Origin: Utricularia gibba | Lineage: Eukaryota; Plantae; Magnoliophyta | DNA: 46,931 bases | Reading direction: 5' to 3' | Assembly: GCA_002189035.1 (NCBI GenBank) | Contig: NEEC01000125.1 | Location: 1 to 46,931, forward strand | Shown: in pieces, positions 5,838 to 42,719 of the stretch | Layout: every line of letters begins with the position of its first letter | How positions within the stretch are numbered: the first letter of the stretch is position 1 | The notes under the pieces: generated by a model | What the model saw: only the letters and a program-made list of their open reading frames with translations | Told to the model about the DNA's origin: nothing | The model's database searches: none | Position numbers and translations under genes: made by a program

Positions 5838-8800
5838 TTACTATTTTATCATTTGATAAGTCCTAACCGGATAAAAAACTAATTTGACTTAAAATTGGGT
5901 ATTAAACAAACAATCTGACATTGAAAAATGAAAGTAAAATAATTTAATATATGCAATTTTTCAAATTATTATTATTAATTGAATTAATTTGTTAATGTGA
6001 TCTATATTTTTTGTATATTTGAATTTTACTTATGTTTATTTAATTAATCGAATTCTTAATTTCAAAATTTTATCACCATCATCCTTGGCAATGTGATGCG
6101 TGAGGATGCACCGGCGAGCGACAATAGATAGTGATCGATGGAGGATGGCAATGGGTGGGTGGTAATTTGAATATAAATTAAGATTGATAATGAATACCAA
6201 TTTTACCAAATAATAAAACAATATAAATTGATATTGTTTGGTTTTTTAAATTTAATTATGCCAACCAAATGGTGTAAACTGCATATGCAATTCTCCCAAC
6301 TCTTTCCAGGGCCCGTGGGCGAAACTTCAACTAAGAAAAGCCCATTTTGGAATATTGGGCCAGCCCATTTTCAATGGATAAACTCAAGTACGACTATTCA
6401 TCCTCTAGTACAAAAGTCGTACGTTGCTCGTATACATTTGTCAACGAAATTCTAACCTTGCTCATTTTTTTGTTTATTTTCTCAGAAAAAAAACCCACAT
6501 TTGTTTTTGTTGGCCGTAATAGTGTTTTCATTTTTCTATAAGTGATATAATAATTTTTATTTTTCATAATACAAAGTAAATGGTGTTTGGTAACAATAAA
6601 AAAAATATATTACATACACTTTTTAAATTAAGGGATAACGTGTGTGTGTGTAGAAGATAATATAATAAACAATGACTATAGATCATATGACAACAAAACT
6701 TTAATATGTGTGAATAATGCATGTAATGCTTGGAATCAGTACGTTATACTTTAGCCGAATGAAGAATGTAGAAATTTTATTGGAATCACTTAGAGTGATG
6801 ATCTAACGATATTTTATTCTTAATGAAATCAAATGGAGAATCAAGAATGGTTATACAAAGAGTGTTAATGAAAATCAAAATGGAATGTTTGAAATCAGTT
6901 CATTATGCTATAATTGAACATAAAAAGGTAGAATTTTGTTGGAATTTTATTGGAAGGATGATATAATGATATGTTATGATCTTAATGAAGTCAACATAAT
7001 AATGGAGATTATTCATACACTATTACACAAATGGATTGTTTGATAGCAAAGTATTAGCATGCTTAAGAATATAATTTTAAGCATATGAATGATATACATC
7101 TAACTAAGACTCCTCTTTATTTATATATATTACTCATATATCAAAAAATGAGTATGTCAATATATAATTATATAAAGTTAATATATGTATTAATCAATCA
7201 AATAATGATGTATGTGTAAATTTAGGTATATATTTTATATTCACTTATTAAATAACCCGAGAAAATACCACCGAAAATCAAAACAATTATAAAAGTTATC
7301 CCGTAGATGAGTTATTTAGAATCGGAAAAAAAATGAATATTTATCATTATAACTATTAAAAGAAATTATAATTTATGAAGCACTAATGAATACAAATATA
7401 AGAAACAAATATATTTGATGAGATAAGCTGGTATAATTGAATAATTAATTTACTAAATATTTTAAGAAATTATATAAATTAAATCTCATTTTAAATTTAT
7501 AATTACAATTAATTATACCTGGTGATTTTATCATTAAAAAAAAAAAATATTTATTAATAGAAAAATGCATACTTCTTAATTTTTTTTGTTTTGAAAGGAA
7601 TGAAAAATAAGGGTTCAATTTTTTGAATTTCATATTCTCCTATGAAACATGATGAATATCGAATATCCGAGAAATGATGATAATCCGGATGAAAGACAAT
7701 TCCTTAAATGCCCTTCCCAGCCGGCTCCCTGAAGCTTGACCCCCGGTCTATAAAAATGAACTAATGGGAAGTCCAAGGTCAACCCTGGTTAATAATTTAA
7801 ATCTTGGAGTAGGACCCACATAATTAGAATAGAGTATTCAATTTATAAGATTCTAATGGATATGGATCCACAAAATCGATATTTGATGATAAGTATCATT
7901 TAAATTTTAATATTGATAATTAAATATTTATAACTTTTTTACTATCAAAAAAATAAAAAATTGCAATGAATATGCACTTTTATTATTGGAAAACAAAATT
8001 TTACAAAAAAAATTGTAAATAAAATGAAGAAAAGAGAAATTATTTAAATTTAGCAGATAGGTAAAATTGTAATCGATTAAACCAAAACTCTGGTTTCAGT
8101 TCAAAATTGTATTTTTCATATGATCCCATTATGAAAAAAACTGTCAAAAAACATTATTTTTACTAACATCCATATATTGTAAGTGCCTAGAAAAAAGTTG
8201 ATATTTTTGAGAATGTTTTAATATACTCATAATAATTTTTATGAACCTTGAAGAAATTTAAAAAAAACATTGTGCTTCTAAAACATACACAATGGCTAAT
8301 GTGGGTGAGTGGAATAGAAATTTGAATCAAATTTGATATCAAATCGTGATTTATGAAAATGTTTTGGAAGGCATCACAACACTAGAGGTGGGTTTATTTT
8401 TTGTATATTTCAAGTTTTTAATATATTCACGAAAATGTAGCTCTGAAGCGCTGTTCTTCAGAGTTCGTTTCGAATGAGATGGGCCATGTTTTGATCAGGG
8501 GAGCAGACGATGTCGTTTTGGCATTTTCTAATTTTTTGTTTTTTTTTGCTTTTCTTTTTCTGAGATGCGGAAGAAGAGATTGGATATTAAAAAAGTAAAA
8601 AGAGAAACAAAAAGGGCCGAGGGATAAAAAAAAAAAAAAAAGCTCGTCTGCAGCGGCTCGTTTCCTGGAAGAATTCTTGAAGAAAGTCAAGGTCACTACT
8701 CTTGGGATCTGGTTCATTTTTTCTGTGAAGAGGGCGCACTGATTCCGCCGATCTGATTCAGTTCGGCCGCAAAAAGTGTGTTTTTATACGTGGAAATTGT

Positions 8801-21295: not shown

Positions 21296-23888
21296 TTGAT
21301 CGAGAGAGGAGACTGGACGAGGGTCATGGAGATCGTTAAGGAATACCCGGAGAAGATCTTGAAGCCGATCACGCCCACCGGCGAAACTCTTCTTATGCTG
21401 GCGGTGAAGTCCCACCAAAATTCTTCGATCATTCAAGAACTGGTGGAGCTAACAGGTGTGAACGAGTTGACTAAAACCGACCGGTTGGGCAACACGGTGC
21501 TGCACATCGTGGCTGAATTTGGGACAGTAGAAGATGCAAATCTTTTGGTGAAAAAGAACCCTCGCTTGCTCACCAGACAAAACTACGCATCCTCTCTTCC
21601 AGTTCACTTGGCCTCCAGGAATCCAACAAACATATGACACCTGTTTTGCAGGAACGCATGGCTAAAGAAAATTCTCCCCAAAACTTGTCTTTAAAGGACG
21701 ACATGATATTAAAAAAGTGAATTCAGATCTAGAGGAAGGCTGCAATTGGCTGGAACTAGTAGAGTCGGTGAATCTAAGAAACTGGACCAAGGTCCTGAAA
21801 ATTGTGACAGAGCATCCCGTCGAGGCACTGAAATTGCGATTCGCACCCAACGACAGAACTCTCCTAATGGTGGCTGTGAAGTCGAATCAAACTCAGTCAA
21901 TTATTCAAGATCTGTTGCGGCTAATGTCCAGTAGTATGCTGATTTGGACAGACACGAGGGCTACACACCACTTCACATCGGGGCCAGTATGCTGATTTGG
22001 ACAGACAGCAAGGGCGACACACCACTTCACATCGCGGCCAAGTACGGGCGCATCGACAATGCTAAGCTTTTGGTGGAGAAGAACCCCCAGCCACTAAACA
22101 TGAAGAACAAAGAATCGCTGCTGCCGGTACACTTGGCCGCCAGGGAACTCCATAAAACCATGACAGTTTATTTCTTGAAAGAAATGAGAAGCAAGGATGA
22201 TCTGCTTGAGGGAGCAGGAGGTGTAGCAATTATGGAGTTGGCTCTCAACTACCAACTTTATGGTATACAGAATCGCACACTACCCAAATTTTTTATGTGT
22301 ATACCCATTTGAGGAAGGAATGTGTTTTGGTTCCCAGGTCTAGCTCTGTGGATTGTGGAGCGCCAACCAAGTCTTGCTATGAGCATGGAGACAATGTGCC
22401 CACCTTTGCATATGTTGGCAAGGACTTCCTCGGCCTTTCCAAGTGGGTGGAAATGGGGGTTTTGGCGAACACTTTTCTACTACTGTAAGCTTGCTTGCCT
22501 CCATCTTCCTGCTGTAGGAAAAGTAGGCCTTGAGCTTCTGTTGATGGTGCCATTTGATTGAAAATCCGTCGCAGGTATTCCAGAGACATATGGAGCTTCG
22601 GAGACGTTTCCACCACCATCAGTCATCTCCACGGCTACTGCAGACAGCAAGACAGCTCAGTCCTCTTTGATCGGAAAACTACTCAGTTCAGTTATCAAGC
22701 CTCTTACCGCAGTTCTTAAACTACTTGTGTTCTATATGCTGATGGGCTTGCAAGGTAACACTAGCGATGAAGCATGTGCTCCCCCCATGAAAATTTTGCG
22801 TCTTTTCAGAAAACACACAGCTTGTGTTCGAATCGTTGCAGGGATTTGGATTTTTCCGGCTAAAGTTGTCATTGATGCAAAAATCAATCATCGCTATGCA
22901 ATCCCGCTTGTGAAGAAGTTGTGTCAAGTCATAAATTCTCAAGCAGGAGAAGAGATAGCCACAAAATATCTCATGGATCCACTCTTTGTCGCCACACAGA
23001 ACGGGATAACTGAGATGGTGAATGAGATACTTGATTCACATCCGGATGCTATCAAATTCAGGACGAAGATGGCACCACTGCCATCAAACTATCGGTGACG
23101 CATCGCCAGATAAATATATTCAACATCCTACGACAACGGTACGTGCAAAGGGGCCACAATTTGTGGTACTGGTTTGATCGGGAGAAGGAGAACAACTTGC
23201 TGCATTTAGTGGCATGTAATCCGAAACGAAACTACCTTGATGCAAACCGCAGCACCTTCTTCGAGATGCAACGCGAGTTGCGATGGTTTCAGGCGATCGA
23301 GAGGATCGTGCATCCTTTTCAAAAGACGAGATTGAATGAAGACAAGGAGACACCCTGGACCGTGTTCATAGAAGAGCATCGTGAGCTCGCTGAAGGGGAA
23401 AGGAGTTGGATTCTTTCCATCGCCACTTCATGCTCCGTCGTGGCGACGCTAGTAGCCACAGTTGCATTCGCGGCCGTCATCACAGTCCCCGGCGGCAACA
23501 ATTCCGATGGGATCCCAAATTTTAAACACGGAAAGAATTTCAGCTTGTTTATATATTCCGATGCTCTCGCCCTTGCCGCCGCCGTCACCACCGTCCTGAC
23601 ATTCTTGACGGTATTCACCTCTCAGTTCAGGCCCATGGATTTCTTGAGCTCTTTACCAAGGAGAGTGGCCATAGGCCTCATCTCCCTTTCCATCTCAGTC
23701 ATCTGTTTGATGGTTGCCTTTATCTGCTGTATGCTTCTCATCGTCGCTCCCATAGCCAACCATCGGAGATGGCGATTGTTGCCACAGGGACTCTACCAAT
23801 ACTACTCTACAGCGCTATGCAGTGGAGATCTCTTTACCGCATACTCAAGTCTTCCTTCCATCGATCTCAGCTCCACTTTGATATGTAG
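21296..23888 (+). CDS. Ankyrin-repeat PGG-domain transmembrane protein (ACD6/ITN1-like), copy 1, with a doubled N-terminal ankyrin module; true start may lie upstream (~21045)
   Basis: ANK repeats (GETLLMLAVKS, GNTVLHIVAEFG, GDTPLHIAAKYG, LPVHLAA), NNLLHLVA, MQRELRWFQAIE, PGG motif SCSVVATLVATVAFAAVITVPGG, TM helices. Corrected-frame end ...LPILLYSAMQW...FDM* (TAG 23886-23888). Apparent 1-bp deletions near 21619, 21715, 23061 and 23751, plus a 52-bp duplication; intactness uncertain. Confidence 0.85.
21933..22039 (+). repeat. Imperfect direct tandem duplication (52 + 55 bp) of part of an ankyrin repeat
   Basis: AGTATGCTGATTTGGACAGACA...CACACCACTTCACATCG occurs at 21933 and again at 21985. 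Confidence 0.85.
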
Positions 23889-25555
23889 AATCTTCTGCTG
23901 TTTGTGTAGGATGTTTTCATTTGAAACAGTTAATGCGTTGAGCTTTGTTCCTTTTGTGATCAAACTCGGTTTTATCATAACAAATTATATATTTTAATTT
24001 TTATCCATAAATTTTACTAGCTATAATTATAAAATTTGATAAACAATTCACCCTAAACCATAAGACTATTTTTCAGTTTAGAACTTCATTGCACGATCGG
24101 TCTATGAAGTATGTGATACGTTTCATCTAAAAATATACTAATATATCATCAATAAAAACCATCATCCAATCTATGAATGTTACTGGTGCATTTGCGAATT
24201 CAAAAGGCATCACTACTAATTCGTGATGCCCACATCCAATCTGAAAGGTCATTGGATTAATTATCTATTTATACCAATTTAACTATTTAAAAACATTAAT
24301 TCCTCATACTCATATGCATTAGTAATTTGTCAAAAACGCTTGTTTCTTTCAATTTCAAATAGTTTAAAATAGATATGAACTTTATAACTATTTTTAAATT
24401 AGTTGATTAGAAAACATTGCTTGGACATAAAAAATCTATCCATTTTTTTTCCTAAAAAAACACATCATGTGCATTTAATAGCACACGGAAATTATTAAAC
24501 TGATGAACTGAAACCAACACCTCACCAAATACAATATACATCCACTATAAATTCTTTATTCAAATATTGGTGACGTGACAAGAAGGTGGCCGTTCCGCCG
24601 CCGGGAAGACGAAATAGGAGAGGATTACGCTTGACTTTCCTTTTTTTTAGCAATGAATTAAATATTATATATCTTATTAAATCGAAATTTGATATTTAAT
24701 ATTATGAATTAGATATTCAATTTTTTTTATCTAATTTAACATTTATGATGAAATATAAATGCATATATTAAGTGGATTTAATTAATTTTACTAATTTAAT
24801 GTAAAAAGTCGTATTAATGACTTGATAAATAATGAATTCTTAAATAAAAATTTCAATAGAACTATGAATCACTGATTCGACTTTTATATCATTTCTGGTG
24901 CATTGGGTGCCCAGATTAATTAATTAATTCATTTTAAATCTAATTTTTTTCTTCATTTATTTATTTTTTTATTTCTTAAATCTTACTAATTAATAATTCT
25001 AATCTAATAAGATTGAATCCGGTACGGGTGTTTATTGACTTCATATTTCTAATTTTATTTGATTTTTTATTTTTTAATTATTTTAAATGATATTTTAAGT
25101 TTCTTTAGTTTTTAGTAAAAATTAATTTATTTGAGTGTTTCAAAAAATAATTTAATATGTATTAAAATATTAAAATTAAAAATCGTAATTTTTTAAATCA
25201 CTAATCAATGTATTCAAATATGTGAATAGATAAATCCACAGTATCTATATATCCTAACCCCACCTAGAGAACATAATCATCATGTTGAAATCATTGATTT
25301 TTTTTTTATATACATTATCTCATTCTTATTTAATCAATTTTACAAAATACGAAATCTGAAAAGAAGCCAAGTCAGTATAGAAATTTGAAGACCGCGGCCG
25401 ATACAGCTTTCTGGATGATTGATTGTTTTGTGGTTTTGAATTAGTTGACTGTTTTGTGGGTTTAAATTGTGGATGATCCACCATGAACGTAGAACGGCGG
25501 CAGGAAGCACTTGGCAGAAATAAACGAAGGCTGGTTGTGCATTGAGGAGGAAGAA

Positions 25556-27654
25556 ATGAGTTCAAGCTCGGCATCCACTTCTTTTCCACTTCGCTACTAT
25601 CCACAGTTGCATGAACCAGCGCTTGAAGGTGCCCCATCCTAAATGATGTTTGCTTTTATCTCTTGTCCTGATGTCTGATTTGCAAGATCATTGTTAACTG
25701 GATTCAGATCTACCGGATTACGTTTCGAACGGAGAATGGGGATTGTGATGAACTTTGCGAGACACCATCCCGACGCACTGTGGACGCCATTACCGCCCAA
25801 GAGTCAGAATCTCCTGATGGTCGCAGTGAAATCGAATCCAAAGCCTTGGATTATTAGACATTTGGTGGAGCTCATGCCCAGGGACAAGTTGAACTTGGGT
25901 GACGACCAGGGCAACACGCCGCTTCACATCGCGGCGGAGTACGGGCGCTTAGAGGATGCTAAGCTTCTGGTGGAGAAGAACAGCGTGCTGCTGGCGACTA
26001 GGAACAAGGAGTCGTTGCTGCCGGTGCACTTGGCCGCCGCGAAACTCCATAAAAGTATGACCTTTCTTTTCATGGAGAAAATGAAAACAAACATGGATGA
26101 TGTGCTTGAAGGACCAGGTGCGGTATCATTCATGGATTTCGCTCTTAGTTTCCAGCTTTACGGTATGCAATAAAAACTGCCCAAACATTGGTTTGAACGG
26201 ATGAAAATGATTCCCATTAGAGGAGTATGGCTCTTGTTTCCAGATCTCGCTCTGTGGATGGTGGAGAAAAAACGATATCTTGCTATGAGCAGGGAAACAA
26301 TGTGCGTCCCATTGAACATGCTGGCATGGAACTCCTCTGCCTTTCGAAGTGTGATGAAACTCGGGATCTTGAAATCCCTTTTTTACTACTGTAAGCCTGC
26401 TTGCCTGGAAAAATACATTTCGAGCTCTGGGTTTCTAGAACTAGTGAACAAATCTAATCTCGGTTTCTAGGTAGTCCAGAGACGGATATAATTTCGGAGA
26501 CGCCATCACCAGGTGGCACTACTATTATTGAAAGTTGGATTCGTACTTCAGGAATCACAAGTTTCAGAAATTGCAGGAAATCGGAATTGCCAAGCAGTCC
26601 CGCTTGTGAAAAAGCTGTGTGAAGTGATCAATGTGGAAGCCCACGGACGAGCTAAAGATTTTCTCATGGAACCGCTCTTCGTCGCTACGCAGAACGGGGT
26701 GATTGAGATTGTGAAAGAAATAGTTGATTCGCATCCGGATGCTGTCAACTTTAGCGACGACGACGGCACTACTGCGATCAAACTAGCCTTGATGCATCGC
26801 CGGAGAAAGATATTCGAGTTCCTACAAAAACGCTACGTGCAAGGGGAAACAACATGTGGCGGGTTTTATCGAGAAAGGAGCAATAATTTGCTGCATTTGG
26901 TGGCACGTAATCCGAAACAAAGCTACCATTATACTTACCGCGACACCATCTTCGAGATGCGGCGCGAGTTGCTATGGTTTCAGGTGATAATGGAATGAAA
27001 ACATGGAACTCGTCGAGCATCATTTTATCTCATCTGATTAAGTGACTGTATCGCTGTGCTCATTCAATCTTCTTGGCGTCCAGGCAATTGAGGATATAGT
27101 GCATCCTTTGCAAAAGATGGACTTGAATGAGGATAACAAGACTCCTTGGGCTGTGTTCCTCGAAGAGCATCGCGAGCTTGCGGACAAGGAAAAGAGCTGG
27201 ACTCTTTCCATCGCGACTTCATGCTCCATCGTGGCGTCACTGGTCGCCACGGTTGCATTCGCAGGGGTCATCACAGTTCCCGGCGGCGAAAATTCCGATG
27301 GGATGCCGAATTTCAAAGATAGGAGAGGGTTCCCCATTTCATCAATTGCAATTATGCCGCCCTGACCTCCGCCATCGGCACCATCCTAATATTCTTGAAC
27401 ATATTCACCTCTCAATTCAGGCCCATGGATTTCATGAGATTGTTGCCGATTAAAGTGATGTTTGTCCTCCTCTTCGTGGCCATTGCCTCGGCTCCTTGTT
27501 CACCGCCTTTAATATAAGTCTGATTCTCATCTTAGATCCCCTAAAAATTTGGACGGCGGCGCTTCGTATTCTTCTAGTGGTACTGCTAGTCCTGGTTTAT
27601 GCTGTGCTCGGTTTCCCAATTTATTATCTACATCCATGGAATCGAAGAAACTAA
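25556..27654 (+). CDS. Ankyrin-repeat PGG-domain transmembrane protein, copy 2 (start approximate)
   Basis: LLMVAVKS, GNTPLHIAAEYG, LPVHLAA, ATQNGVIEIV, NNLLHLVA, RELLWFQ/AIE, AFAGVITVPGG. Ends ...YLHPWNRRN* (TAA 27652-27654). Several small frame-disrupting deletions, mostly in homopolymers; no TE insertion and no clear nonsense substitution seen. Confidence 0.8.
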
Positions 27655-29902
27655 TCATCGACATCGAATGATCCGGGGGGGGTGAAGACGACCATGCTGC
27701 TTCCATTACTACTACTGTGTTGTAACCTTGAATTTTCGAATAATAATTTAAAAAATGAAAAAAAAAACCCAGGAGTGTTCTTTATATTATTATCACTCTA
27801 ACCATTAGACAATTTTTAATAAGAAATGATCTTTAAATACCTATTTTATTTTTCTAAAATTCATTTATACATGAAAAGAAAAACGCAATAAACTCAAGAC
27901 CACTCGGTAATATTCTTGGCGTTTCACATGGTACCCGTATTTAAATATGGGTTATTCGAGAATATAACTAGATTATACTGTTTACAAAAATTTTAAAAAT
28001 TATTTTTACTATTTCAAAATTTCATATAATTAATCCTTATTATTCAAAATAATAATAAAACTGCGCTTCAATAATTTAGTACTTATTATTTATATAAACA
28101 GTTTGGTACAAATATTTTCTTTTATTTGAAATAATTGGCATTTTTTCCAATGGTTTAAAAATTTAATAAAATTAATCTCCAACTATGTTTAGCTTTTAAA
28201 CATAAGATATTAATTATACCAATTATTTGAAATAGTGGGAATTACTTGTAGGTAGTATGTCAAATTTTGTGAATTAATTATATCCGATATGTGAAACTTT
28301 TGAAACATATTTTGTTAATGAGGACAAAAAATATTAATGCCTTTTTAACATACTTTATTCAAATACATGCCAAAATACTAATATTATAACAAAAATGCCT
28401 GGTTCTTGTAATGATTATTTCAATAATTTGGTATTATTTTTCTCATAAAACATGAGTAATTTTTTCTCCCTAGTACATAATTTCCTTTCTATTGTGTTAG
28501 AAATAATTCTATTTTTCAAGAAGTAAAATCAATAGAAAGTAATTATTACCCAACATTCTTTGTCATGTTTTATAACGAGTTTCAAGCACAAAGCACATGT
28601 GATTTAAGTCCATAGCTTCATCATACTGTTTGGTTTTCAATTCTCAAATCCCGTTGGATATGCGGATGCCTTTAAGTCTCGCGACCGCTATTACCCTCTT
28701 TCCACTCGGAAATTTTTCTCCTGTGTGATGGTGGGGGTTGGTAGGATCAAAGAAGGACAGGGTTACCATCATATGCTAATGAGATAGGATTGGAAGACAC
28801 GGTTAATCAAATCCATGAAGGTTGCTAGTGTGTTTGTGAGTTCAAAAGGCATCACTAATAACTCATGATGTTCATATCGAGTTTGAAAGACCATCGGATT
28901 AGTTATCTATTTATACTAATTTAAATATTTAAAAACATTAATTCCTTACATTCGTATCCATTGGCAACTTATCAAAAAGGCTTGTCATTATTTCAATTTC
29001 AAATAGTTTAAAATATGACATAGGAGATCAACTTTACAACTATTCTTACATTAGTTGATTAGAAAACACATACAACTGATTGCTTGGACATAAAAAATCT
29101 ATCAATTTTTTTCTAAAAAAACGCATCATGTGCATTTAATGGCACATGGAAACTATTAAACTGATGAACTGAAACCAACACCTCACCAAATACAATATAC
29201 ATCCACTAAAAATTTTTTATTCAATGATTGGTGACGTAACAAGGTGGCCGTTCCTCCGCCAGGGAAGACGAAATAGAAGAGGATTACGATTGACTGCTTC
29301 TTTTCTTTTTTTTTTGCGCAGTAAAGAAAATATTATATATCTTATTAAATCGAAATTGTAGGTTGTTGGGTACAAACTGGGATCTCATTTGATTGGACAT
29401 GTGAGATTATTTTAAGTTAAATATTGCTAAACATTGATATTTAATATTATGAATTAGATATTCAATTTTTTTTTTTATCTAATTTAACATTTATGATGAA
29501 ATTTTAAGACCCCGGCCAATACAGCTTCTGGATGATTGTTTTGTGGTTTAAAATTGTGGATGATCCACCATGAACGTAGAACGGCGGCAGCAAGCACTTG
29601 GCAGAAATAAGCGAAGGCTGGTTGCGCTTGAAGTGCAGTGAGAAGGAAGAAATGCGTTCAAGCTTGGCATCCACTTCTGATCCACAGTTGCGTGAACCAG
29701 CGCTTGAAGGTGCTCCATCCCTCCTCCAATCAAATGATGTTTGCTTCTATCTCTTGTCCTGATGTCTGATTTGCAAGATCATTGTTAACTGGATTCAGAT
29801 CTACGGGATTACGTTTCGAACGGAGTATGGGGGATTGTGATGAACTTTCAGACACAGCATCCCGAAGCACTGTGGACGCCATTACCGCCCAAGAGTCAGA
29901 AT

Positions 29903-30269
29903 TGTTGGAGTGATAGTTCAATCAAGGACTTAACTGACTCGCCCAATGCATCAGACACAGAAAAGAAAACTCCCGCTGAGAATCCGACTTCGGAGAAGAA
30001 TAAGACAGACACGTTGAAGCTTCGCGGTCTGATTGTTCTGGGCTCCAATATTTCCTCAAATGAATACATGAAGAAGCCCAGTCAGGCCCATGTGCCAGAG
30101 CCTGAAAGCCCACCGTAATCCTGCACTCGAAGACAAAACAACGGCTAGTTAGATGCAGCAACGGATACTTTCTTCACTATAAATTGAGCATTGTACCTGT
30201 TTACAAGATACAGCCCTCAAGTTTTATAAATGTTATTTCATATCATGCCCTGTCTCTAAAATTATTTCA
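29903..30269 (+). mobile_element. Solo LTR, 367 bp, inserted in a coding exon
   Basis: Begins TGTTGG, ends TTTCA, flanked by AGAAT direct repeats (29898-29902, 30270-30274). The empty site GTCAGAATCTCCTG is present in copy 2. + strand CTATAAAT at 30177-30184. Confidence 0.9.
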
Positions 30270-30710
30270 AGAATCTCCTGATGTTCGCCTTGAAATCGAA
30301 TCCAAAGCCTTGGATTATTAGAGAGTTGGTGGACCTGATGCCCAGGGACAGGTTGACCTTGGTTGACAACGAGGGCAACATGCCGCTTCACATCGCGGCG
30401 GAGTACGGGCGCTTAGAGAATGCTAAGCTTCTGGTGGAGAAGAACAGCGTGCTGCTAGCGACCAGGAATAATGAGTCGTTGCTGCCGGTGCACATGGCTG
30501 CCGCGAAACTCCGTAAAAGTATGACCTTTCTTTTTATGGAAAAGATGAGAACAAACATGGATGATGTGCTTGAAGGACCAGGTGTGGTGTCGCTCATGGA
30601 TTTCGCTCTTAGTTTCCAACTTTACGGTATGCACTACAAACTGCCCAAACATTGGTTTGAACGGATGAAAATGATTCTCATTTGAGTACTCAAAGAGTAT
30701 GGCTCTTGTT

Positions 30711-31126
30711 TATAGGAATAATGGCGCTGCAATTGAGTTGAAGAGGACAAAAGACCTCACAACAGACTTCCAAGTCGAAGGAGGGCTCTTTATTAATGTA
30801 AAAGAGTACAAAAAACGTTCTGTAAACTAAGGGAATTTATAGAGTACAAAATCAGTTGTCGAGATCCTATAATTCCTCGATGCGGTTGCCTAGAATGATG
30901 CCTTTGACTCCCTCAAATAATGGAAAGTAGTTGATCTTGAAGAAGTAAACCTACTCCACTTCCTTTCATAAGCATATGATTTGACCGACTCATGTTCAAG
31001 TAGGGTGTACTAGGTTATCGAGTGACATTTTCCATCCTCATTAGGGGTCAGTCTCCTTATTACCCCTCACCTTATGGCTCCAACCCTTATTTCTCCACTG
31101 ACCCATGTCCTTCAACACCCTCTCTC
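30711..31126 (-). repeat. Copia 3' LTR (30711-31117, 407 bp) with polypurine tract GAGAGAGGG (31118-31126)
   Basis: On the minus strand the PPT is followed directly by TGTTGAAGG; internal CTATAAAT and AATAAA; ends CCTATA (probably CA mutated to TA). Confidence 0.85.
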
Positions 31127-31936
31127 AAACTTAGCTGTGGTTGGAGGCTAAGTTTGATTCTGAAAAATAGAAGTCTTTGAAATGGCATTCTCTTGGTGAA
31201 GAGATCTGCGAGCTGGTGTTGAGAGGGGATGTGACGAGTCACCAAGTAACCTAGGGCCACTCTTTCTCGAACAAAATGGTAGTCAACTTCAATATGCTTA
31301 CTTCGAGAATGTAGAACCAGGTTTACAGTCAAGTGCAGGGCACTGAGGTTGTCACAATATAGTGTAGGTGTGGTTGCAAGTTTAACTTGAATGTCTCTCA
31401 GAATGAACTGTAACCAAGTTACTTTTGCTGCGGTATGGGCCATTGCTCGATACTCTACTTCTGTACTGGAGCGAGACACTGTGTGTTGCTTTTTGGAGCT
31501 CCAAGATATTGGGTTTTTGCCCAAGAGAACACAATAGCCAGTGGTAGACCGTCGAGTAAGTGGGCAACTTGCCCAATCTGCATCTGAATGCGCATCCAAG
31601 CACATGGAAGAAGACTTGTCGAAGGACAATCCAAGGTTCAGCGTGCTCTTTATATACTTCAGGACTCAGGTGGCCAATGTGAGATGGTAGTGAGTTAGCG
31701 ACTGCATAAATTGTGAAATGAAATTCACACTGTATGTGATGTCAGGCCTTGTAAACGTTAGATATTGCAAAGCTCCTACAAGGGCTCGAAAGGGAGTAGG
31801 ATCAACAAGACGTTCTCCAGGCTGTGCAAGCTTAAGTTTTGACACTTGTGGTGTAGTGGCTGGCTTGCAATCTCAAAAACCAAACCTGTCTAAGACACAG
31901 AGAGCATAGTGAGACTGAGTAAGTTGAAGGCTAGTT

Positions 31937-33150
31937 GCAGTTTGTAAGACTTGGACTCCAAGGAAGTGATGCAAGGGACCAAGATCCTTCATACCAAATT
32001 CTGTGGATAATTTTTTGATCAAATCATGTATCAGGTCTGGGCTTGTTCCTGTTACAACGATGTCATCTACATAGAGGAGTAGGATTAGTGTATCACTGTC
32101 AACATGAGTGACAAATAATGACGGATCAAGCAAAACTACAAAAGAAACCCAAACTTAAGAGAAAAGAGCTGAAACGATCAAACCAGGCCCTCGATGCCTG
32201 TTTGAGACCATACAACGCTTTATTCAATTTGTAGACATGTGTAGGGTATTGAGAACTACGCATACCTGGGGGTTGCTCCATATAGATATTCTCTGTGAGT
32301 TCACCATGAAGAAAGGCATTCTTCATATCCAACTGGCGAATGTCCCACTCATTGATAAGTGTAATAGCGATTATCAGTCGGATGGTAGTTGGTCTGATCA
32401 CAAGAGAGAACGTTTCTGTGTAGTCAACGCCATCTATCACAGGAGAGAACGTTTCTGTGCGTCACCCCGGGTGGAGCGCTGCGATGCATGAAGAATTAGA
32501 AGCACTCCACAAAAACAACACCTGGACTTTGGTTCCACGAAGTTCTTTGCAGCACTCCATTGACTGCAAATGGGTATTCAAGGCAAAACTTAAGCCTGAT
32601 GGATCACTCGATCGTCTCAAAGCCCGTCTCGTTGCAAAGGGCTTTAACCAGATAGATGGCGTTGACTACACAGAAACGTTCTCTCCTGTGATCAGACCAA
32701 CTCCATCCGACTGATAATCGCTATTGCACTTATCAATGAGTGGGACATTCGCCGGTTGGATGTGAAGAATGCCTTTTTTCATGGTGAACTCACAGAGAAT
32801 ATTTATATGGAGCAACCCCCAAGTATGCGTAGTTCTCAATACCCTACACATGTCTACAAATTGAATAAAGCGTTGTATGGTCTCAAATAGGCACCGAAGG
32901 CCTGGTTTGATCGTTTCAGCTCTTTTCTCTTAAGTTTGGGTTTCTTTTGTAGTTTGCTTGATCCGTCATTATTTGTCACTCATGTTGACAGTGATACACT
33001 AATCCTACTCCTCTATGTAGATGACATCGTTGTAACAGGAACAAGCCCAGACCTGATACATGATTTGATCAAAAAATTATCCATAGAATTTGGTATGAAG
33101 GATCTTGGTCCCTTGCATCACTTCCTTGGAGTCCAAGTCTTACAAACTGC
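31937..33150. repeat. Long inverted repeat of copia RT: arms 31937-32438 and 32651-33150, spacer 212 bp
   Basis: The arms are reverse complements with about 11 substitutions and 2 single-base indels by manual comparison. The ORF track shows the same peptide (LLLYVDDIVVTGTSPDLIHDLIKKLS) on both strands. Confidence 0.95.
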
Positions 33151-36100
33151 CTTCAACATTGTTTCCAGATCTCGCTCTGAGGATTGTGGAGAAAAAGCGA
33201 TATCTTGCTATGAGCAGGGAAACAATGTGCCTCCCATTGAACATGTTGGCATGGAACTCCTCTGCCTTTCGAAGTGTGATGAAACTCGGGATCCTGCAAT
33301 TCCTTTTTCACTACTGTAAGCTAGCTTGCCTGGAAAAATACATTTCGAGCTCCGGTTTCTAAAACCAGTGAACAAATCTAATCTCGCTTTCTAGGTATTC
33401 CAGAGACGAATATATTTTCGGACACGCCGTCACCAAGTAGCACTACTATTATTGAAAGTTGGATTCGTACTTCAGGAATCACAAGTTTCAGGAATTGCAG
33501 GAAATCGGAGTTGCCACGCAGTCCCGCTTGTGAATAAGCTGTGTGAAGTGATCAATGTGGAAGCCCACGGACGAGCTAAAGATTTTCTCATGGAACCGCT
33601 CTTCGTCGCAACGTAGAACGGGGTGATTGAGATTGTGAAAGAGATAGTTGATTCGCATCCGGATGCTATCAACTTTAGCGACGACGACGGCACTACTGCG
33701 ATCAAACTAGCCTCGATGCATCGCCGGAGAAAGATATTCGAGTTCCTACAAAAACGCTACGTGCAAGGGGGAAACAACATGTGGCGCGGGTTTTATCGAG
33801 AAAGGAGCAATAATTTGCTGCATTTGGTGGCACGTAATCCGAAACAAAGCTACCATTACTTACCGCGACACCATCTTCGAGATGCGGCGCGAGTTGCTAT
33901 GGTTTCAGGTGATAATGGAATGAAAACATGGAACTCGTCGACTGTATCGCTGTTCTCTTCATCTTGGATCATCCTTATGTCTGTTTTGACTGAGCGGCAA
34001 TACTGATTGTGCTCATTCAATCTTCTTTGTGTCCAGGCAATTGAGGATATAGTGCATCCTTTGCAAAAGATGGGCTTGAATGAAGATAAGAAAACTCCTT
34101 GGGCTGTGTTCCTAGAAGAGCATCGCGAGCTTGTGGAGAAGGAAAAGAACTGGATTCTTTCCATCGTGACTTCATGCTCCTTCGTGGCGTCACTGGTGGC
34201 CACGGTTGCATTCGCAGGAGTTATCACATTTCCCGGCGGCAACAGTCCCGATGGGATGCCGAATTTCAAAAATAGGAGCACGTTCACAGTTTTCATCGAT
34301 TCCAGTAATGCCGCCCTGATCTCCGCCATCGCCACCATCGCAATATTCGTGAACGTATTCACCTCTCCGTTGAGGCCCATGGATTTCATGAGATTGTTGC
34401 CGAATAAAGTGATGTTTGGCCTCATCTTCCTAGCCTTTGCCGTCACCTTCTTGTTGGCAGCCTTTTATGCAAGTCTGATTCTCATCTCAGATCCTCAAAA
34501 ATTCTGCCGGCGAAGCTTCGGATTCTTGTAGTGGTACTGGCAGTCCTGGTTTATGCGGTGATCTATTTCCCATTATATTATCTACATCCATGGAATCGAA
34601 GAAACTAATCGTCGACATCGAATGATCTGGGAGGGGTGAAGACGACGATGCTGCTTCCATGCACTACTACCATGTTGTAACCTCGAATTTCCGAATAATA
34701 ATTTAAAAAATGAAAAAAATCATGGAGTGTTCTTATTCTAACCATTAGACAATATTTAAAAAGAAATGATCTTTGAATACTTACGTTATTTTTCTAAAAT
34801 TCAGAAAAATGCAATAAACTCAGACATTCGGTAATATAATTACTTTATACTGTTTATGAAAATTATAAAAATATTTTTTACTATTTCAAAATCTGATATA
34901 ATTAATCCCTATTATTTCAAATAAAAAAATTATTACTCATTATTTATATAAACAGTTTGGTACAATTATTTTCTTTTTTTTTGAAATAATTGGTATTAAT
35001 AGTTTCCAATCATTAAAAAATTTAATAAAATTAATTTCCAATTGTGTTTAGTTATTTAATAATACAGACTCATTATACAAATGATTTCAAATAGTGGGAA
35101 ACTAAAAATGTTTAACATATAAAATTTTGGGAATTAAGTGTATTTAATATGTCAAACTTTATGAATTAATTATATTCGATATGTGAAACTTTTGAGATAT
35201 ATTTTGTCAATGAGGATAAAATAAAAAATTTATATAAAATGATGAGACTTAGTTTTATCAAAATATTAATCATTAATATTTTTTGATTATTTACTCATTC
35301 AAATTCATGAATAATAGAGCATAAGGAAAATAAAAAACACATGCCAAAATACTAATATTATAACAAAAATGTCTGGTTCTTGTAATGATTATTTCAATAA
35401 TTTGGTAGTATTTTTCTCATAAAACATGATTAAATTTTTCTCCATAGTACATAATTTCCTATTCTATTGTGTTAGAAATAATTCTATTCTTCAAAAAATA
35501 AAATCAATAGAAAGTAATTATTACCGAACATTCTTTGTCATGTTTTATAACGAGTTTCAAGCATAGAGCACATGTGATTTAAGTCCATAGCTTCATGATT
35601 GTGTTTGGTTTTCAATTCTCAAATCCCGTTGGATATGCGGATGCCTTCAATCCCCGCGAGCGCTATTACCATCGGGTTGGTAGGATCAAAGAATGAGCTA
35701 GACTGGATTAAATTAATTTTTGAAAATCATTGAAATCAATTCTATTTATAATTAATTCTATTGGTTTTTTTATTTTTTAATGCATATCAAATTCTATTTT
35801 ACGAGAATTAATTTTTTAAAATCAGTAAATTTGTATAAAAAGCATGAAATGATAATTTTTTTATAATAATTGATTTTCAAGAAACAATTCTAAAATTAAA
35901 ATTATAGTTACATATTTTTTAATAAATAATAAATTGGTAATATGATAAATAATTTATTTATCTTGATTTTTAAAATTTAATTTTAATATAAATATATTTA
36001 AATTAAAATAATAACGTAAATTATAATTTAAAAATTATGAAAATTTTTTATAATATATATGATATATAAAAAATATTTTAAATTATAAATTTTTAAGATA

Positions 36101-37715
36101 TAATTATTAATAAATATGAATAAATATATGATTTATTTATTAAAATTAATTTTTATTTTTTATATTATAAACATGAAATAATTTTATAATTAATCATTTA
36201 AAAATATTTTCAAACATATATAAGTTATTATTATATCAGAACTTTCAATTTTCCAGAAATTAACTTTAGAGTAATGTTTTAAAATGTAACAAGTTTCCCA
36301 CAATCCCGAGGAGCAGCTCTCGTTGGGGAACGGTGGCTTGGAACTTCCTTTCAGCGAAGTAGCCCACAGGTGAAATCCGGTGAACTCCCACCTATACGAT
36401 TACTAACACTACTAGATTAAACATTATAAATTAGAAGATTAACTTTATAAATTATTGAATGTTTTGAATATATGTTTTAATGATTAAATAAAATATTAAT
36501 TGAAAAAATTATAATATTTATTGTTTCATTTATTCCAAAAATATTAAGTTATTCATAATTTAATATATTAAATATATAATATATATTTTTATTTTATTAA
36601 ATTTTATAATATAATTTAGATTATTCTAAAAAATAATTTTGAAATCTCAAATGGATTTTATTCACATAATATAAAACACAATTTCAAATTATAGAAATAT
36701 TCATAGATTCGAGAAATTCAATAATTTATAAAGTTAATTATAGAATCTTAAGTTTTGATTTTATTACATAACTATTAAAGATTAGAATTTTCAAAAATTA
36801 AATAGAATGAATTCAAAAAATTATGAAAACAAAATTGACTCTATAATCGTGTAATGTCTGATGTTTAAAAAACATTAATTTATTCAACATGAATAGTTTT
36901 TTATATTAATTGAATTAAATTCTATTAAATAACAGCTATCACAATTTATTGACTATATTTTTTACCATTTAAAATACTAATAAAGTTATTTGTATGTATA
37001 TATGCTGATTAATTAATTTTAAAAGAAAAAAAAGTGAAAATAGTTTTTTAAAGGGGTTTGTTCTGTTGTCCACTTCTCAAGCTCACTCCCACCGAAGGGA
37101 GCGATCCGACATCTTCATTCTCTCTTTTCTGATGTTAGTGGGGAAGTAGCAAATTTCCATTTTGCCAACTTCTCTTTGTTCTTGGTTTGCAGCCCCTGTG
37201 ATTCTTTTTCTTGCATAGGGATTGGCATTAAAGGGGTTGTGGTTTTTCGTTTTCTTTTTTTTGCTGTTGATTCACTCTCTAGCCTTGGTTGCGACAATGA
37301 CAAGGGAAACTAGATTTAATGAAAGCGAAGTCCTTTATTAGCCATTGTAGCTTCTCTTACTTCTGAATCCGCTGCGTACAATTATGCAATCCGTTTTTAT
37401 TTCTTGAGCAGCGGGAAAAAAAAAAAAAACAAAGGAATGGGTGGAGACATTTATGAGATTGGCGACTGAGTCTGATGGGTAACTTGTTGGTTCCTTTTAG
37501 AAACCTGTAGTGTTCTTTGTGAATTTTTTTTTAGCTTATTTGTAATTTTTTATATGGTTTTTGTAGGTGTTACTTGCATGAATGGTGGAGCTATGTTGCT
37601 CTGAGAGGACTTGATTCATGTTCACTCATGCTTCCTTGTTCTTTATCTAATGAGCTGTTGAAGCCTACTGGCTGAAGGTTTCAAGCTGATAGATTTCATC
37701 CTTTTTGTTGACACG

Positions 37716-40700
37716 ATGGGATTTGAAACCCGAGATGATGACATGGTTGTCACCCAAATTAGTGTTGCTGGACTTGAAGACTATGTTACTGCCAAGATGC
37801 TCTTGGATTATTTTGAGGATAAAATCGGACTTGTATGGAGATGCAGATTGAAAACTTCCTCCACCCCTCCTGATGCATATCCAATTTATGACATTGAGAT
37901 TGGTAGTTCACAAAGAAATAATAACTATGAGAAGGCACAGCGTCATGCATTTCTACATTTTGCAGCTCCACATTCTACGAAAAATGCTCTAGAATCTGCT
38001 AAACGCGGTGAGCTTATTATTGGAGAGAAGCAACTGAAAGTTGGTTTGGGACCCCAAAATCCCCACCGCTTTCATGAAAGGAGAATAACTACTGAACCAT
38101 ATCGGCTGTCTGATGTTTCCCTTGAGATTGGAGTAATGAAGAACCAAGATGAGTTTGTTGTTGGTTGGAGAGGGCCAAACAATGAGGTTGATTTTGTTGT
38201 TGATCCTTACAATGGTTCCTGTAAACTACAATTCACGAAAGATACTGCTTTTTGTGTGAAGGATAAACCAAAAGCCAGACCTCTTGTAATAAGGTGTGAT
38301 TTCAAGGTGGAGTTTTCATCAAGAGAGATACTTGGGATAAAACAATACAGGGATTTTTCCTTTTTGATAATTGTGTTGCAGTTGGCTTCATCACCTTTGA
38401 TATACTACAGAACAGCTGATGATGACATTGAAGATACAGTTCCTTATGATTTGTTAGATGATGATGATCCCTGGATCCGGACAACAGATTTCACTTCAAA
38501 CAGAGTTATAGGTCGATGTAATACATATCGAATTTTTCTGAAGCCACGGAATGGTCCAAAACTCAAGAAAGCCTTGGAGTACCTTCGTCAGAGAAGAGTG
38601 GCTGTACATGATGAATTTCGAGGAAAACTCTTTCAAGTTTTGGATGAGCCTGACTTGCATAGTATGACTACGATCCCTTCTTTTGTTTTCAGCGTGTTGA
38701 AGGAATAGATTTCAAGATTATGTTCTTGGTGAATGCACTGATGCATAAAGGTATTGTCAATTACCATCAGATGCCTGAGGAGTTTTTTGATATGTTGAGA
38801 ACTCAGCCGAATGAGCTCGTTGTAGCTTCACTTACGCACTTGTCTCACTACAAGCATCCTGTTGATAATGCTTTCAAGGCTTTGAAAGCTGTTCAGAAAT
38901 GGCTATCAAGAAATCCTAAACTTCTTGAGAAACGTAATAAACTGGGGGAAAGTATTCATGTCAGGAGATTGATTATTACCCCCACCAGAGCTTATTGTCT
39001 TCCCCCTGAAATAGAACTTTCAAATAGAGTTCTAAGGAAGTATGCAGATGTTGCTGACCGATTCCTAAGAGTCACTTTTACAGATGAAGCAATGCAGACA
39101 CTCAACAAAAATCTTTTAACCCATTACGCTCATCCAATACTAAGAGATAAGACATCATATCCAGTCCCACAAAAGACGACCGTGTTTAATCGAATCAGGA
39201 GTATTACAAAGGATGGATTTTATTTATGTGGGCGGAAGTACTCATTCCTGGCATTTTCAGCAAATCAACTGCGTGACCAATCAGCCTGGTTTTTCGCTGA
39301 AGACAGGAACATTAGTGTGAAGAATATTATGAGCTGGATGGGAAATTTTCCAAATAAGAATGTTGCAAAATTTGCTGCTAGGATGGGCCAATGTTTCTCC
39401 TCCACATATGAAACTGTAGAAGTACCTCCATCAGAAGTTAATTCAGATCTTCGTGATGTAGAAAGAAATGGTTATACATTCTCTGATGGCATAGGCATGA
39501 TTTCAATTGATCTGGCCATGGAAGTTGCCAAGAAACTGCAGTTGGCTCCTGATTTACCCTCTGCTTACCAAATCAGGTATGCTGGTTACAAGGGCGTTGT
39601 TGCGTGCTGGCCTTCCATGGGTGATGGAAAACGCTTAAGCCTAAGGCCCAGCATGAAGAAATTTGAGTCGAAACACACAATGCTGAGATATGTTCATGGA
39701 CTAAATTCCTACCTGGCTTTCTGAATCGGCAAGTCATCACACTTCTCACAGCTTTGGATGTTCCAGGTGATGTATTCTGGGGAATGCAAGAAGGAATGGT
39801 TTCAAAGCTTGATCAAATGCTTGAGGATCCTGGTGTTGCTTTTGATGTCCTCACTGCTTCCTGTGGTGAGCAGGGAAATACAGCAGCACTAATGGTAAGT
39901 ACTGGATTTAAACCCCAAGCTGAAGCTCATCTACGAGGCATGCTGATAAGCATTAGAGCTGCTCAGCTTGGTGATCTTAGACAAAAATCTAGAATTTTCG
40001 TTTCTTCAGGGAGGTGGTTGATGGGTTGCCTAGACGAGCTTGGCATACTTGAGCAGGGTCAGTGCTTCATCCAAGTCTCAAATTCTTCTTTGGAAAAGTG
40101 TTTCATGAAGCATGGATCAACTTTTTCCGACATCAAAAAGAATCTTCTAGTGGTCAAGGGCCTTGTAGCAGTTGCAAAGAATCCATGTCTTCACCCCGGA
40201 GATGTGCGAATTTTGGAGGCAATTGATGTGCCTGGACTGCATCATCTTTATGACTGTCTTGTCTTTCCTCAGAAGGGAGATAGGCCTCATACAAATGAAG
40301 CTTCTGGGAGTGATCTGGATGGAGACGTATACTTTGTCACTTGGGATGAGAATCTCATTCCTCCAAGTAAGAGAAGCTCACCTCCCATGGAGTATACAAC
40401 CCCAAAAGTCGCGGAACTGCCTCGCAATGTCATTCATTCGGTAATCTATTCCGAGATTTCTTGAGATGAATTTTTTTACTCATCAAAGCTTCTTAGAAAC
40501 CTGACCTTGCTTTCTGCTGCATCTTCTTCTGTTGATCCTAAGTGAAGTCATTTGCTTCCTTTACAGGACATAATTGACTTCTTCTCAAGGAACATTGTGA
40601 ATGAGAACCTTGGTACCATCTGCAACGCCCATGTGGTTCATGCAGATCTTAGTGAGGATGGAGCGAAGGATGAGAAATGCCTCAAATTGGCAGAGCTTGC

Positions 40701-41438
40701 GTCCCTTGCAGTTGATTTCCCAAAAACCGGTAAAATCGTGAGCATGCCACCTGAACTGAGGCCAAAGTTGTATCCTGATTTCATGGGGAAAGAAGAATTC
40801 CAAACCTACCGTTCCAGCAAGATTTTAGGCAAGCTCTACCGCAGAATCAAGGAAGCTTATGATGATGAATCAGCACCCCAGAATCAGACCTCCCCTGATG
40901 CCATCACATGGGATCCAGACCTTGTGATTCCTGGTTCAGAAGCTTTCCTACACGATGCATGGCCCTGCAAATGCTCATACGACGGACAACTAATGGGTCT
41001 ACTCTCCCAATACAAAGTGAACCGCGAGGAGGAGGTCGTTACAGGACACATATGGTCGATGCCGAAAACCAGTAGCAAGAAACAAGGGGTCCTCAAGGAC
41101 AGGCTCAGACATGCTTACGATGCACTGAGAAAAGAGTTCAGAGGTGTGTTTGAGAGCATGGGGCCGGAGTTTGAACAACTCCCGGAGGAAGACAGGAGTA
41201 TTGCATACGAAAGAAAAGCATCCGCCTGGTACCAGGTAACGTACCAGGAAAGGTGGGTAATGAAAACAAGGGAGTCTCTGGGAATTGAGGATGCATCAGC
41301 AGCACCAGCAATGCTGAGCTTCCCGTGGATTGCTGCCGACTATCTTGCGCGATTAAGGTCCGAGTTCGAAAACAGCAAAACTCCATCTCCTCTGAGCCGT
41401 TCGATTCTCTTGCCAGGTATCTGGCTGATAAGATTTGA
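37716..41438 (+). CDS. RDR6: RNA-dependent RNA polymerase 6, 2 coding exons (intron ~40441-40567)
   Basis: RDR6-type N-terminus VVTQISVAG...GLVWRCRLKTSSTPPDAYP; AARMGQCFSST, FSDGIG, QIRYAGYKGVV, KNPCLHPGDVR, catalytic SGSDLDGDVYFVTWD. Corrected-frame end ...DSLARYLADKI*. Three apparent 1-bp deletions (~38667, ~39685, ~41352). Confidence 0.95.
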
Positions 41439-42719
41439 CTCACCTTCTCTCGCCATGCTCCATATCCACCTTCCTGTATATTTTGCTTTTACTAAAACAT
41501 TTGGGTTGTTTTTTTTTTCATAAATGTTTTTAAGAATTCGAAAATATCATCTAATTTTCCTTATATTCAGGGGAATATGTTTTAATTAGAATAATTATGA
41601 TTATCAAAAAATTCATTAAATATCATGATTTATTTTTGCTTTTTTATGTTAATTGGTATTTTGAGTGTGTCGTGATAATTGTCTCTCTTTTATTATAAAG
41701 AAAACAATTAAAAAATTCTAAATGAATAAAATATAATTTTTTATGTTAAAAAATTATTTTTTATGTAATAACAGCATTGAATTAATACCATCAATAATAT
41801 GGGTGATTGAAATCATTGATGTACAAGATAAATGGTTATTTTTAGTATTTATTAAATATTAAAATAAAAAATTAGTATTGAAAAAATAATAATAGAAGAT
41901 TAGAGTAATATTATGGAAAATTTTTAAATATTATTTTTACTTTTAAAAAAGTATAAATTAGAAGTATATTTTTTTGAAAAAGTAGAAACATAAATGGTAT
42001 TGACAAATTGGAATGGAGATCAGAAGTCAAAGGGTGAAAAATATTTTTAAAAATCTGATGGAAAAAAATAGAAATGATAATAAAATAGTTTTTTTATTAT
42101 TTTACTTATGATTCATTTGTAATTACACCTAAAAATTATTTTAATCAAAAATATAAAAAGTAAAATTATTTTTATAAAATTTTTAAAACAATTTTTACTT
42201 TTAAAAAGTAAAATAATTTTAATTTAGTACATCAAATTTTTAATTTAGTTCTATCAAAAAATATTTTAGTATTGCACTTTAAAAATAGTTTTGAAACAGT
42301 AGAGAAGAACTACTTTTATCTTATTTCTATTTTTTTTAATATGAATCCTTAAAAATTTTCACAATTTTCTACAATAATCTTTTTTTATTTTATTTTATAA
42401 ATTATTTTACTTCTATTTTTTACTTTTTCAAAAGTAAAAAGAGGTTTAAATTTTTCTAGAACAATTCCTAAGTATTTTATACAAAATTATTTTTGATAAA
42501 AACAGAAAAAAACATTCAAAATCTTCCAAAATACAATTCTAAACTATTTTAGTAAAAAAAATTAAAATGAATATAAAATAATATAATAATCCCCGTTTGT
42601 TTGCAGATAGATAGAGTAGGGCGTACATTTATGTGGGCCGAGCACATCTTATCATCGAGCCGGCCCATTACCATCCCGTTACGATCAATATACACGAGAC
42701 TTGGTGACGTATGTCATCA

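Follow-up and report, generated by a model that had tools for sequence, protein, structure and literature searches.

A rearranged copia remnant with a near-perfect inverted repeat in an intron of a tandem ANK-PGG gene copy of Utricularia gibba

Inverted-repeat loci described so far and the copia repeat of U. gibba

How plants first recognise active transposons is an open question, and hairpin-forming rearranged copies are among the few documented triggers. Long inverted-repeat transcripts made by Pol II are cut by DCL2/3/4 into siRNAs of 21, 22, and 24 nt without an RDR (PMC10827316). In maize, the Mu killer locus causes a heritable silencing of MuDR that is genetically proven (Slotkin et al. 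2003, 2005; PMC3440606, PMC10827316). The repeat of Mu killer includes TIRA, the promoter-bearing terminal repeat, and the model by which the locus is transcribed through read-through has been questioned (PMC3440606). Mu killer and the U. gibba locus described here have in common a naturally occurring transposon duplication, partial and inverted, beside host transcription units, from which a hairpin is possible on paper. However, Mu killer duplicates TIRA together with the 5' part of the transposase gene, whereas the U. gibba repeat consists of internal reverse transcriptase (RT) sequence of an LTR retrotransposon and is, here as in the comparisons below, known from sequence alone.

The Ac/Ds composite insertions of maize are likewise inverted duplications, produced there by the element's own aberrant replication or transposition, and their coding parts give rise to 21-22-nt siRNAs (bioRxiv 10.1101/2020.01.07.897926). 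They differ from the U. gibba locus in that they derive from a DNA transposon by re-replication and in that dsRNA, siRNAs, and heritable repression have been measured for them. Copia sequences lying in opposite orientation at one locus have also been proposed as silencing trigger for the nested antisense EVD insertions of Arabidopsis (PMC11624286), but in that case two whole insertions with facing LTRs are the proposed source of an LTR hairpin, whereas the U. gibba locus appears to be a single rearranged copy with only RT in its repeat. The endoIR-siRNA locus IR71 of Arabidopsis is, like the U. gibba repeat, long and slightly imperfect, and loci of this type are defined by measured small RNAs (PMC10827316, PMC5393186). 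An intronic source of hairpin siRNAs is called a 'sirtron' in PMC5545994. The U. gibba repeat lies wholly inside an intron, the gene copy concerned being a pseudogene. A further parallel is offered by twin priming of LINE-1, where a 5' inversion leaves a copy truncated and partly inverted during its own reverse transcription with the target-site duplication (TSD) kept; LINE-1 uses target-primed reverse transcription and its inversions usually come without a long duplicated arm, whereas the U. gibba sequence belongs to an LTR element and has a duplicated arm of 500 bp.

By its structure, the locus is unexceptional within a familiar class, the copia-derived inverted repeats. What lends it some interest is that the anatomy of the junctions is resolved and hints that the repeat arose during reverse transcription: the junctions appear to display the route of formation, with serial template switches, both tips of the element kept, and a TSD. 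The repeat is probably the scar of one aberrant Ty1/copia copy, a by-product and not a selected device, and adds a cleanly resolved LTR-retrotransposon example, as a structural example only, of how such repeats arise.

Host gene copy and structure of the insert

The analysed stretch of DNA (the window) comprises positions 1-46,931 of the forward strand of contig NEEC01000125.1 in the U. gibba assembly GCA_002189035.1, and the read evidence consists of Logan contigs from four DNA runs (X1, X2, X3, and X4). The window contains three ANK-PGG paralogs with Ank and PGG domains in tandem (21300-24000, 25400-27900, and 29500-34800), which have a mutual identity of 75-92%. In the alignment of copy 3 with copy 2, the offset is 4464 as far as position 30686 and 6924 from 33159 onwards, and this jump indicates that an intron of copy 3 contains 2.4 kb of additional sequence. 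The two aligned blocks are separated in copy 2 by 11 nt situated inside a phase-1 intron of ~85 nt (..TAC G/GTATGC .. TTTCCAG/AT CTC.., with slashes at the splice sites) that has no insert. The splice sites of copy 3 are the donor GT at 30627-28 and the acceptor CAG at 33166-68. The comparison with the ~85-nt intron of copy 2 thereby bears out the initial annotation, which had placed the repeat in the intron of copy 3, 5' of an intact acceptor. The insert approaches this acceptor to within 5-10 nt, and the original branch-site and polypyrimidine region has been displaced by 2.4 kb.

The second transposon insertion of copy 3 is a solo LTR of an unrelated family, which is flanked by the 5-bp TSD AGAAT (29898-29902 and 30270-30274) and is absent from copy 2. 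Since both insertions are missing in copy 2, both are younger than the duplication. In addition, copy 3 has an in-frame stop codon at 33614-16, where the equivalent codon of copy 2 encodes glutamine. Copy 3 is a pseudogene, as its exon is interrupted by the solo LTR and its reading frame is closed by the premature stop. Contigs from X1 and X2 have a C at 33614, so that the stop is either polymorphic or these contigs derive from a closer paralog. A candidate empty allele, represented in X2 and X3 by a joint that skips 30686-33159, was rejected: the contigs are 7-8% diverged, which equals the distance between copies 2 and 3, and were assigned to the paralog. The solo LTR on the + strand faces the LTR of the copia remnant (30711-31117, - strand) across the remaining exon piece 30275-30626, and convergent transcripts over that exon are therefore conceivable.

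The whole insert (30711-33158; 2,448 bp) is one copia remnant bordered on both sides by a duplication of TTGTT, and its parts are listed in Table 1.

Table 1. Positions of the copia remnant, its parts, and the surrounding features of ANK-PGG copy 3 within the window.
Feature	Positions	Strand	Remarks
Solo LTR of an unrelated family, in a coding exon of copy 3	29903-30269	+	367 bp; TG..CA ends; TATAAA at 30178
Intron of copy 3	30627-33168	+	Phase 1, GT..CAG; ~85 nt before and 2,542 nt after insertion of the copia remnant
Left copy of the TSD, TTGTT	30706-30710		Copy 2 has a single TTGTTT here
Sole LTR of the remnant, ~407 bp	30711-31117	-	5' tip TGTTGAAGG at 31117-31109; starts TGTTG
Polypurine tract GAGAGAGGG	31126-31118	-	Directly before the LTR
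Internal region with polypurine tract, pol end, and C-terminal part of RT	31118-31936	-	Frameshifts present
Left arm, RT (RVT_2 profile ~47-231)	31937-32438	-	Continuous with the rest of the element
Templated filler, 18 nt	32439-32456		32433-32459 is a second copy of 32393-32420
Spacer, N-terminal RT sequence in sense, single occurrence	32457-32650	+	Loose end at 32457 in X1
Right arm, RT in sense	32651-33150	+	Frameshift and stop codons
CCTTCAACA, 9 nt, reverse complement of the LTR 5' tip TGTTGAAGG	33150-33158	-	Exact match
Right copy of the TSD, TTGTT	33159-33163		Followed by TCCAG, acceptor

The affiliation with Ty1/copia follows from RVT_2 matches on four ORF pieces together with the pol end, the polypurine tract, and the LTR, as well as from a 5-bp TSD around the termini, of which the right one comprises only 9 nt of LTR in an ambiguous reading. 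Of the features of an autonomous copy (two LTRs, primer-binding site, gag, protease, and integrase), the remnant has one LTR and nothing upstream of RT, and both copies of RT are frameshifted. The RNase H region, which gave no Pfam match, was assigned by position and ORF sequence only. Three contigs of other copies diverge from the window at 30711/30712 and 31112/31117, i.e., at both ends of the remnant LTR, whose 3' end reads ..CCTATA instead of the usual ..CA. This LTR lies outside the inverted repeat and its promoter is directed away from it. At the DNA level, a search of the window revealed no further copy of the RT or of either LTR. An exact-product look-up of two locus-specific ORFs, one running across the fold-back (32237-32488) and one in the host exon (30281-30682), found none on record. 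The Rfam scan of 29-35 kb yielded no match and thus no known miRNA or other RNA family in this region.

As determined by a repeat search and by blastn, the two arms of the inverted repeat have lengths of 502 and 500 nt and an identity of 97.4%, with 212 nt between them; the repeat search reported three abutting inverted pairs that blastn merges into a single 502-nt match. Both arms are recognised by the Pfam profile RVT_2 (E=4.7e-30 and 2.6e-17 in the left arm, 2.3e-14 and 3.3e-13 on the right side), and since the N-terminal ends of RT face each other the arms are head-to-head. The architecture given in the initial annotation, two RT arms of ~500 bp and ~98% identity arranged head-to-head around a 212-bp loop, thus proved correct. 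In a gapped alignment, the arms differ by 11 substitutions and two 1-nt indels. The indels (32386/32135) are possibly not both real: all three X1 contigs at 32702 have an extra A that would remove one of them, although these contigs may themselves represent the left arm or other copies. An extension of the arms past 33150, obtained in the gapped alignment up to 33179, was discarded as over-extension with many gaps, its meaningful part being only the 8-9 nt CCTTCAAC(A). RNA of the + strand is predicted to fold into one continuous stem of ~500 pairs with a minimum free energy (MFE) of -1022 kcal/mol and a longest perfect duplex run of 131 nt. The locus shares with endoIR loci a long, near-perfect repeat that can fold as one RNA.

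Arm divergence and possible capacity for silencing

All of the 11 substitutions between the arms are transitions. By comparison, the flanking paralog DNA shows 85 transitions vs. 75 transversions (53% transitions; P ~1e-3), and transitions make up 73% of the contig differences (P 0.03). When the arm differences are read as C-to-T changes, one falls in a CG, five in a CHG, and five in a CHH context, the corresponding numbers of sites in both arms and on both strands being ~46, 61, and 302. This transition-only divergence fits an in-place decay of two once-identical copies under long-term cytosine methylation, and such a decay argues against two different source copies. The methylation signature is expected from a hairpin-driven pathway as readily as from ordinary Pol IV silencing. 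At rates for transposable elements and annual plants, the arm divergence of 2.2% corresponds to roughly 0.5-2 million years (0.9-1.6 at 1.3e-8 to 7e-9 substitutions per site per year), and the slower rate of 2.5e-9 substitutions per site per year gives ~4.5 million years; methylated sites mutate faster. In RNA of the + strand, seven of the 11 differences stay paired as G:U and four become A:C. This is no departure from chance, so the wobble pairs do not suggest that pairing on one strand has been selected for. The 11 arm-diagnostic substitutions, among them those at 32403/32686, 32334/32754, and 32003/33084, make the locus usable for small-RNA and methylation tests.

It had been proposed that the ANK promoter or the upstream solo LTR drives transcription of the repeat, and in the window both are indeed located upstream of it in + orientation; the solo LTR with its TATAAA motif is the nearest upstream promoter candidate on the + strand. 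With two correctly oriented promoters, read-through on the + strand is plausible. If Pol II read through the repeat on either strand, the 500-bp stem would become a Dicer substrate and yield siRNAs against the RT of a small family. Such siRNAs would mean transcript cleavage and methylation of the element body, not silencing of the LTR promoter. As the repeat does not contain the LTR promoter, heritable transcriptional silencing is not expected and a heritable effect of the Mu killer type is unlikely. The likeness to Mu killer drawn in the initial annotation thus holds for the partial inverted duplication of a transposon near a host promoter, but does not extend to the element promoter, which is not part of the repeat. 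The locus could function in the manner of endogenous inverted-repeat siRNA loci and is not an equivalent of Mu killer, whose repeat includes the promoter.

The anticipated silencing of related copia elements across the genome would have targets, since related copies of 90-99% identity exist, but these appear to form only a small family: the contig depth summed over the remnant amounts, as a rough estimate, to ~1-3x that of the single-copy flanks, from which a family that is probably small was deduced. A run search with a long query, based on sampled words and contigs, returned DNA runs only and no RNA run, which is weak evidence of low expression.

That the locus is a working hairpin-RNA silencer, read from the ANK promoter or the solo LTR, processed by Dicer-like cleavage without an RNA-dependent RNA polymerase, and silencing related copia elements in trans, is considered unlikely. 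The long and near-perfect stem (with perfect runs of up to 131 nt and the low MFE given above), the proper orientation of the upstream promoters, the genomic relatives of 90-99% identity, the methylation-type mutation signature on the arms, and the documented precedents of Mu killer and the Ac/Ds composite insertions are all compatible with such a function. Set against these are the absence of the LTR promoter from the repeat, the lack of RNA evidence from the run search, the pseudogene state of the host copy with the insert only 5-10 nt from the acceptor, the apparently small family together with the age and decay of this copy, and the fact that the read-through model is disputed even for Mu killer (PMC3440606). 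Judged from the sequence, some hairpin-derived siRNAs may be made somewhere in the plant, a possibility to which we give clearly less than even weight, and it is decidedly doubtful that the locus matters for silencing today. The combined proposal, according to which the repeat would have arisen in one step, as an aberrant cDNA, and would since then have served as an RDR-independent source of hairpin siRNAs restraining a small copia family, appears more doubtful still. If it were true, LTR retrotransposons would regularly make their own 'killer' alleles through error-prone reverse transcription.

Junctions and origin of the repeat

Matching stretches of 3 to 8 nt are found at or beside each junction. 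The templated filler has a 3-nt overlap at either end, ATC at the start and GTG (32457-59) at the end. It has a G at a position where the left arm now has an A and where the right arm keeps the matching base; as this G allele was lost from the left arm, the filler keeps the sequence as it was when the repeat formed. In a contig of a canonical copy, the upstream sequence leading up to 32457 has the translation ..PSTPKSVKEA, a type of sequence that is the usual lead-in to copia RT. Since canonical copies are continuous through 32457, this position is a true breakpoint. At the third junction, the GCCTTCAAC of RT, which lies 7 nt past the end of the arm (31921-29), provides an 8-nt match (CCTTCAAC) with the tip of the LTR. 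Between the pieces there is no LTR and no second TSD. The microhomologies and the templated filler, combined with one pair of TSDs and no LTR in between, point to serial template switching on a single element.

We read the 9 nt at 33150-58 as the last nucleotides of a lost 5' LTR, a reading that is ambiguous. The alternative would be RT sequence after a 7-nt deletion, RT having GCCTTCAAC at 31921-31929. Seven nucleotides that are present in the left arm at 31932-38 are absent, and a further small deletion is needed under either reading and under either of the models discussed below. The left end of the insert coincides with the LTR end in other copies and the right end with the other LTR tip, so that both termini of the element are present.

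These features would be accounted for by an aberrant cDNA. Plus-strand synthesis would have begun at the polypurine tract, yielded the first 9 nt of the LTR, and then left its template. The strand would have annealed via 8 nt to the RT of the sense RNA genome and copied ~700 nt backwards, before it rejoined the minus-strand DNA with one short slip and continued to the end. On the + strand of the window, this would give the order of antisense RT up to 32438, the filler, and then sense RT that starts at 32457, 194 nt further upstream, and runs as far as 33150. Integrase would have inserted the molecule carrying both tips and TTGTT would have been duplicated in the process, with the antisense element coming to occupy the short intron of one of the tandem ANK-PGG paralogs, today a pseudogene. 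As an alternative route, a replication or repair error on the chromosome after a normal insertion could have led to the same product. Such a rearrangement must end 9 nt from the edge of the element, and the 8-nt homology could have guided that as well. The aberrant-cDNA model most simply explains most features at once, and the model of a chromosomal rearrangement is not separable from it.

Capture of filler DNA, in which a double-strand break in the intron would have been patched without integrase by copia pieces from elsewhere through template switches, is improbable as the source of the whole insert. Templated filler and microhomologies are typical of repair of the polymerase-theta type or of replication-based repair, and a 7-nt deletion in RT could explain the right end without any LTR tip. 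However, this explanation leaves the target duplication of 5-6 bp unaccounted for, as well as the position of the left end at the LTR end of other copies and the correspondence of the right end to the other LTR tip. Two separate, oppositely oriented insertions of one family, trimmed by later deletions, are much less probable again: nested antisense insertions are known for copia, e.g., EVD (PMC11624286), but the U. gibba locus has a single pair of TSDs, no remnant of an LTR between the pieces, and filler at the junction, and arm differences consisting of transitions only would not be expected of two distinct source copies.

The arrangement was also checked against the four DNA runs. A 498-nt contig of X2 is identical to 32730-33227 without any mismatch, contains nine alleles specific to the right arm, and continues across the right junction into the exon. 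Another contig, from X3, matches 32236-32393 with 0 mismatches and contains six left-arm-specific alleles. The region 32611-32948 is covered in X4, and a contig of X1 covers the filler at 32452 at a distance of at least 40 nt from the contig end. Arm-diagnostic SNPs, which the initial annotation had suggested for the mapping of small-RNA reads, identified both arm haplotypes in independent short-read contigs. Among the contigs of the four DNA runs, none spans both arms and none of those listed extends over the left boundary at 30711. Had long reads formed a fold-back chimera, identical arms and no spacer would be expected, and an assembly artefact of this kind, in favour of which the lack of a read across both arms and possible single-base indel errors in the window (frameshifts of the RDR6 homologue described below) may be cited, is hardly credible given that the arms differ at 13 positions and enclose a 212-nt spacer with filler and that the right junction and the haplotypes of the two arms recur exactly in short-read contigs from separate studies.

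Some other parts of the window were noted in passing. A homologue of RDR6 (37716-41523, + strand; Pfam RBD_RDR6, RDR6_2nd, and RdRP) is located ~3 kb downstream of the ANK-PGG array. It has a normal-looking intron at ~40.44-40.57 kb, and its frame shifts near 38.66 kb and 39.68 kb, where there is no space for introns; these changes of frame indicate either a pseudogene or single-base indels in the assembly. Very AT-rich blocks with a GC content of 0.17-0.25 lie between genes at 35000-37000, 7000-8000, and 24000-25000, and a full-length U5 spliceosomal snRNA gene is present at 2802-2916 on the + strand (Rfam RF00020, 99.5 bits).
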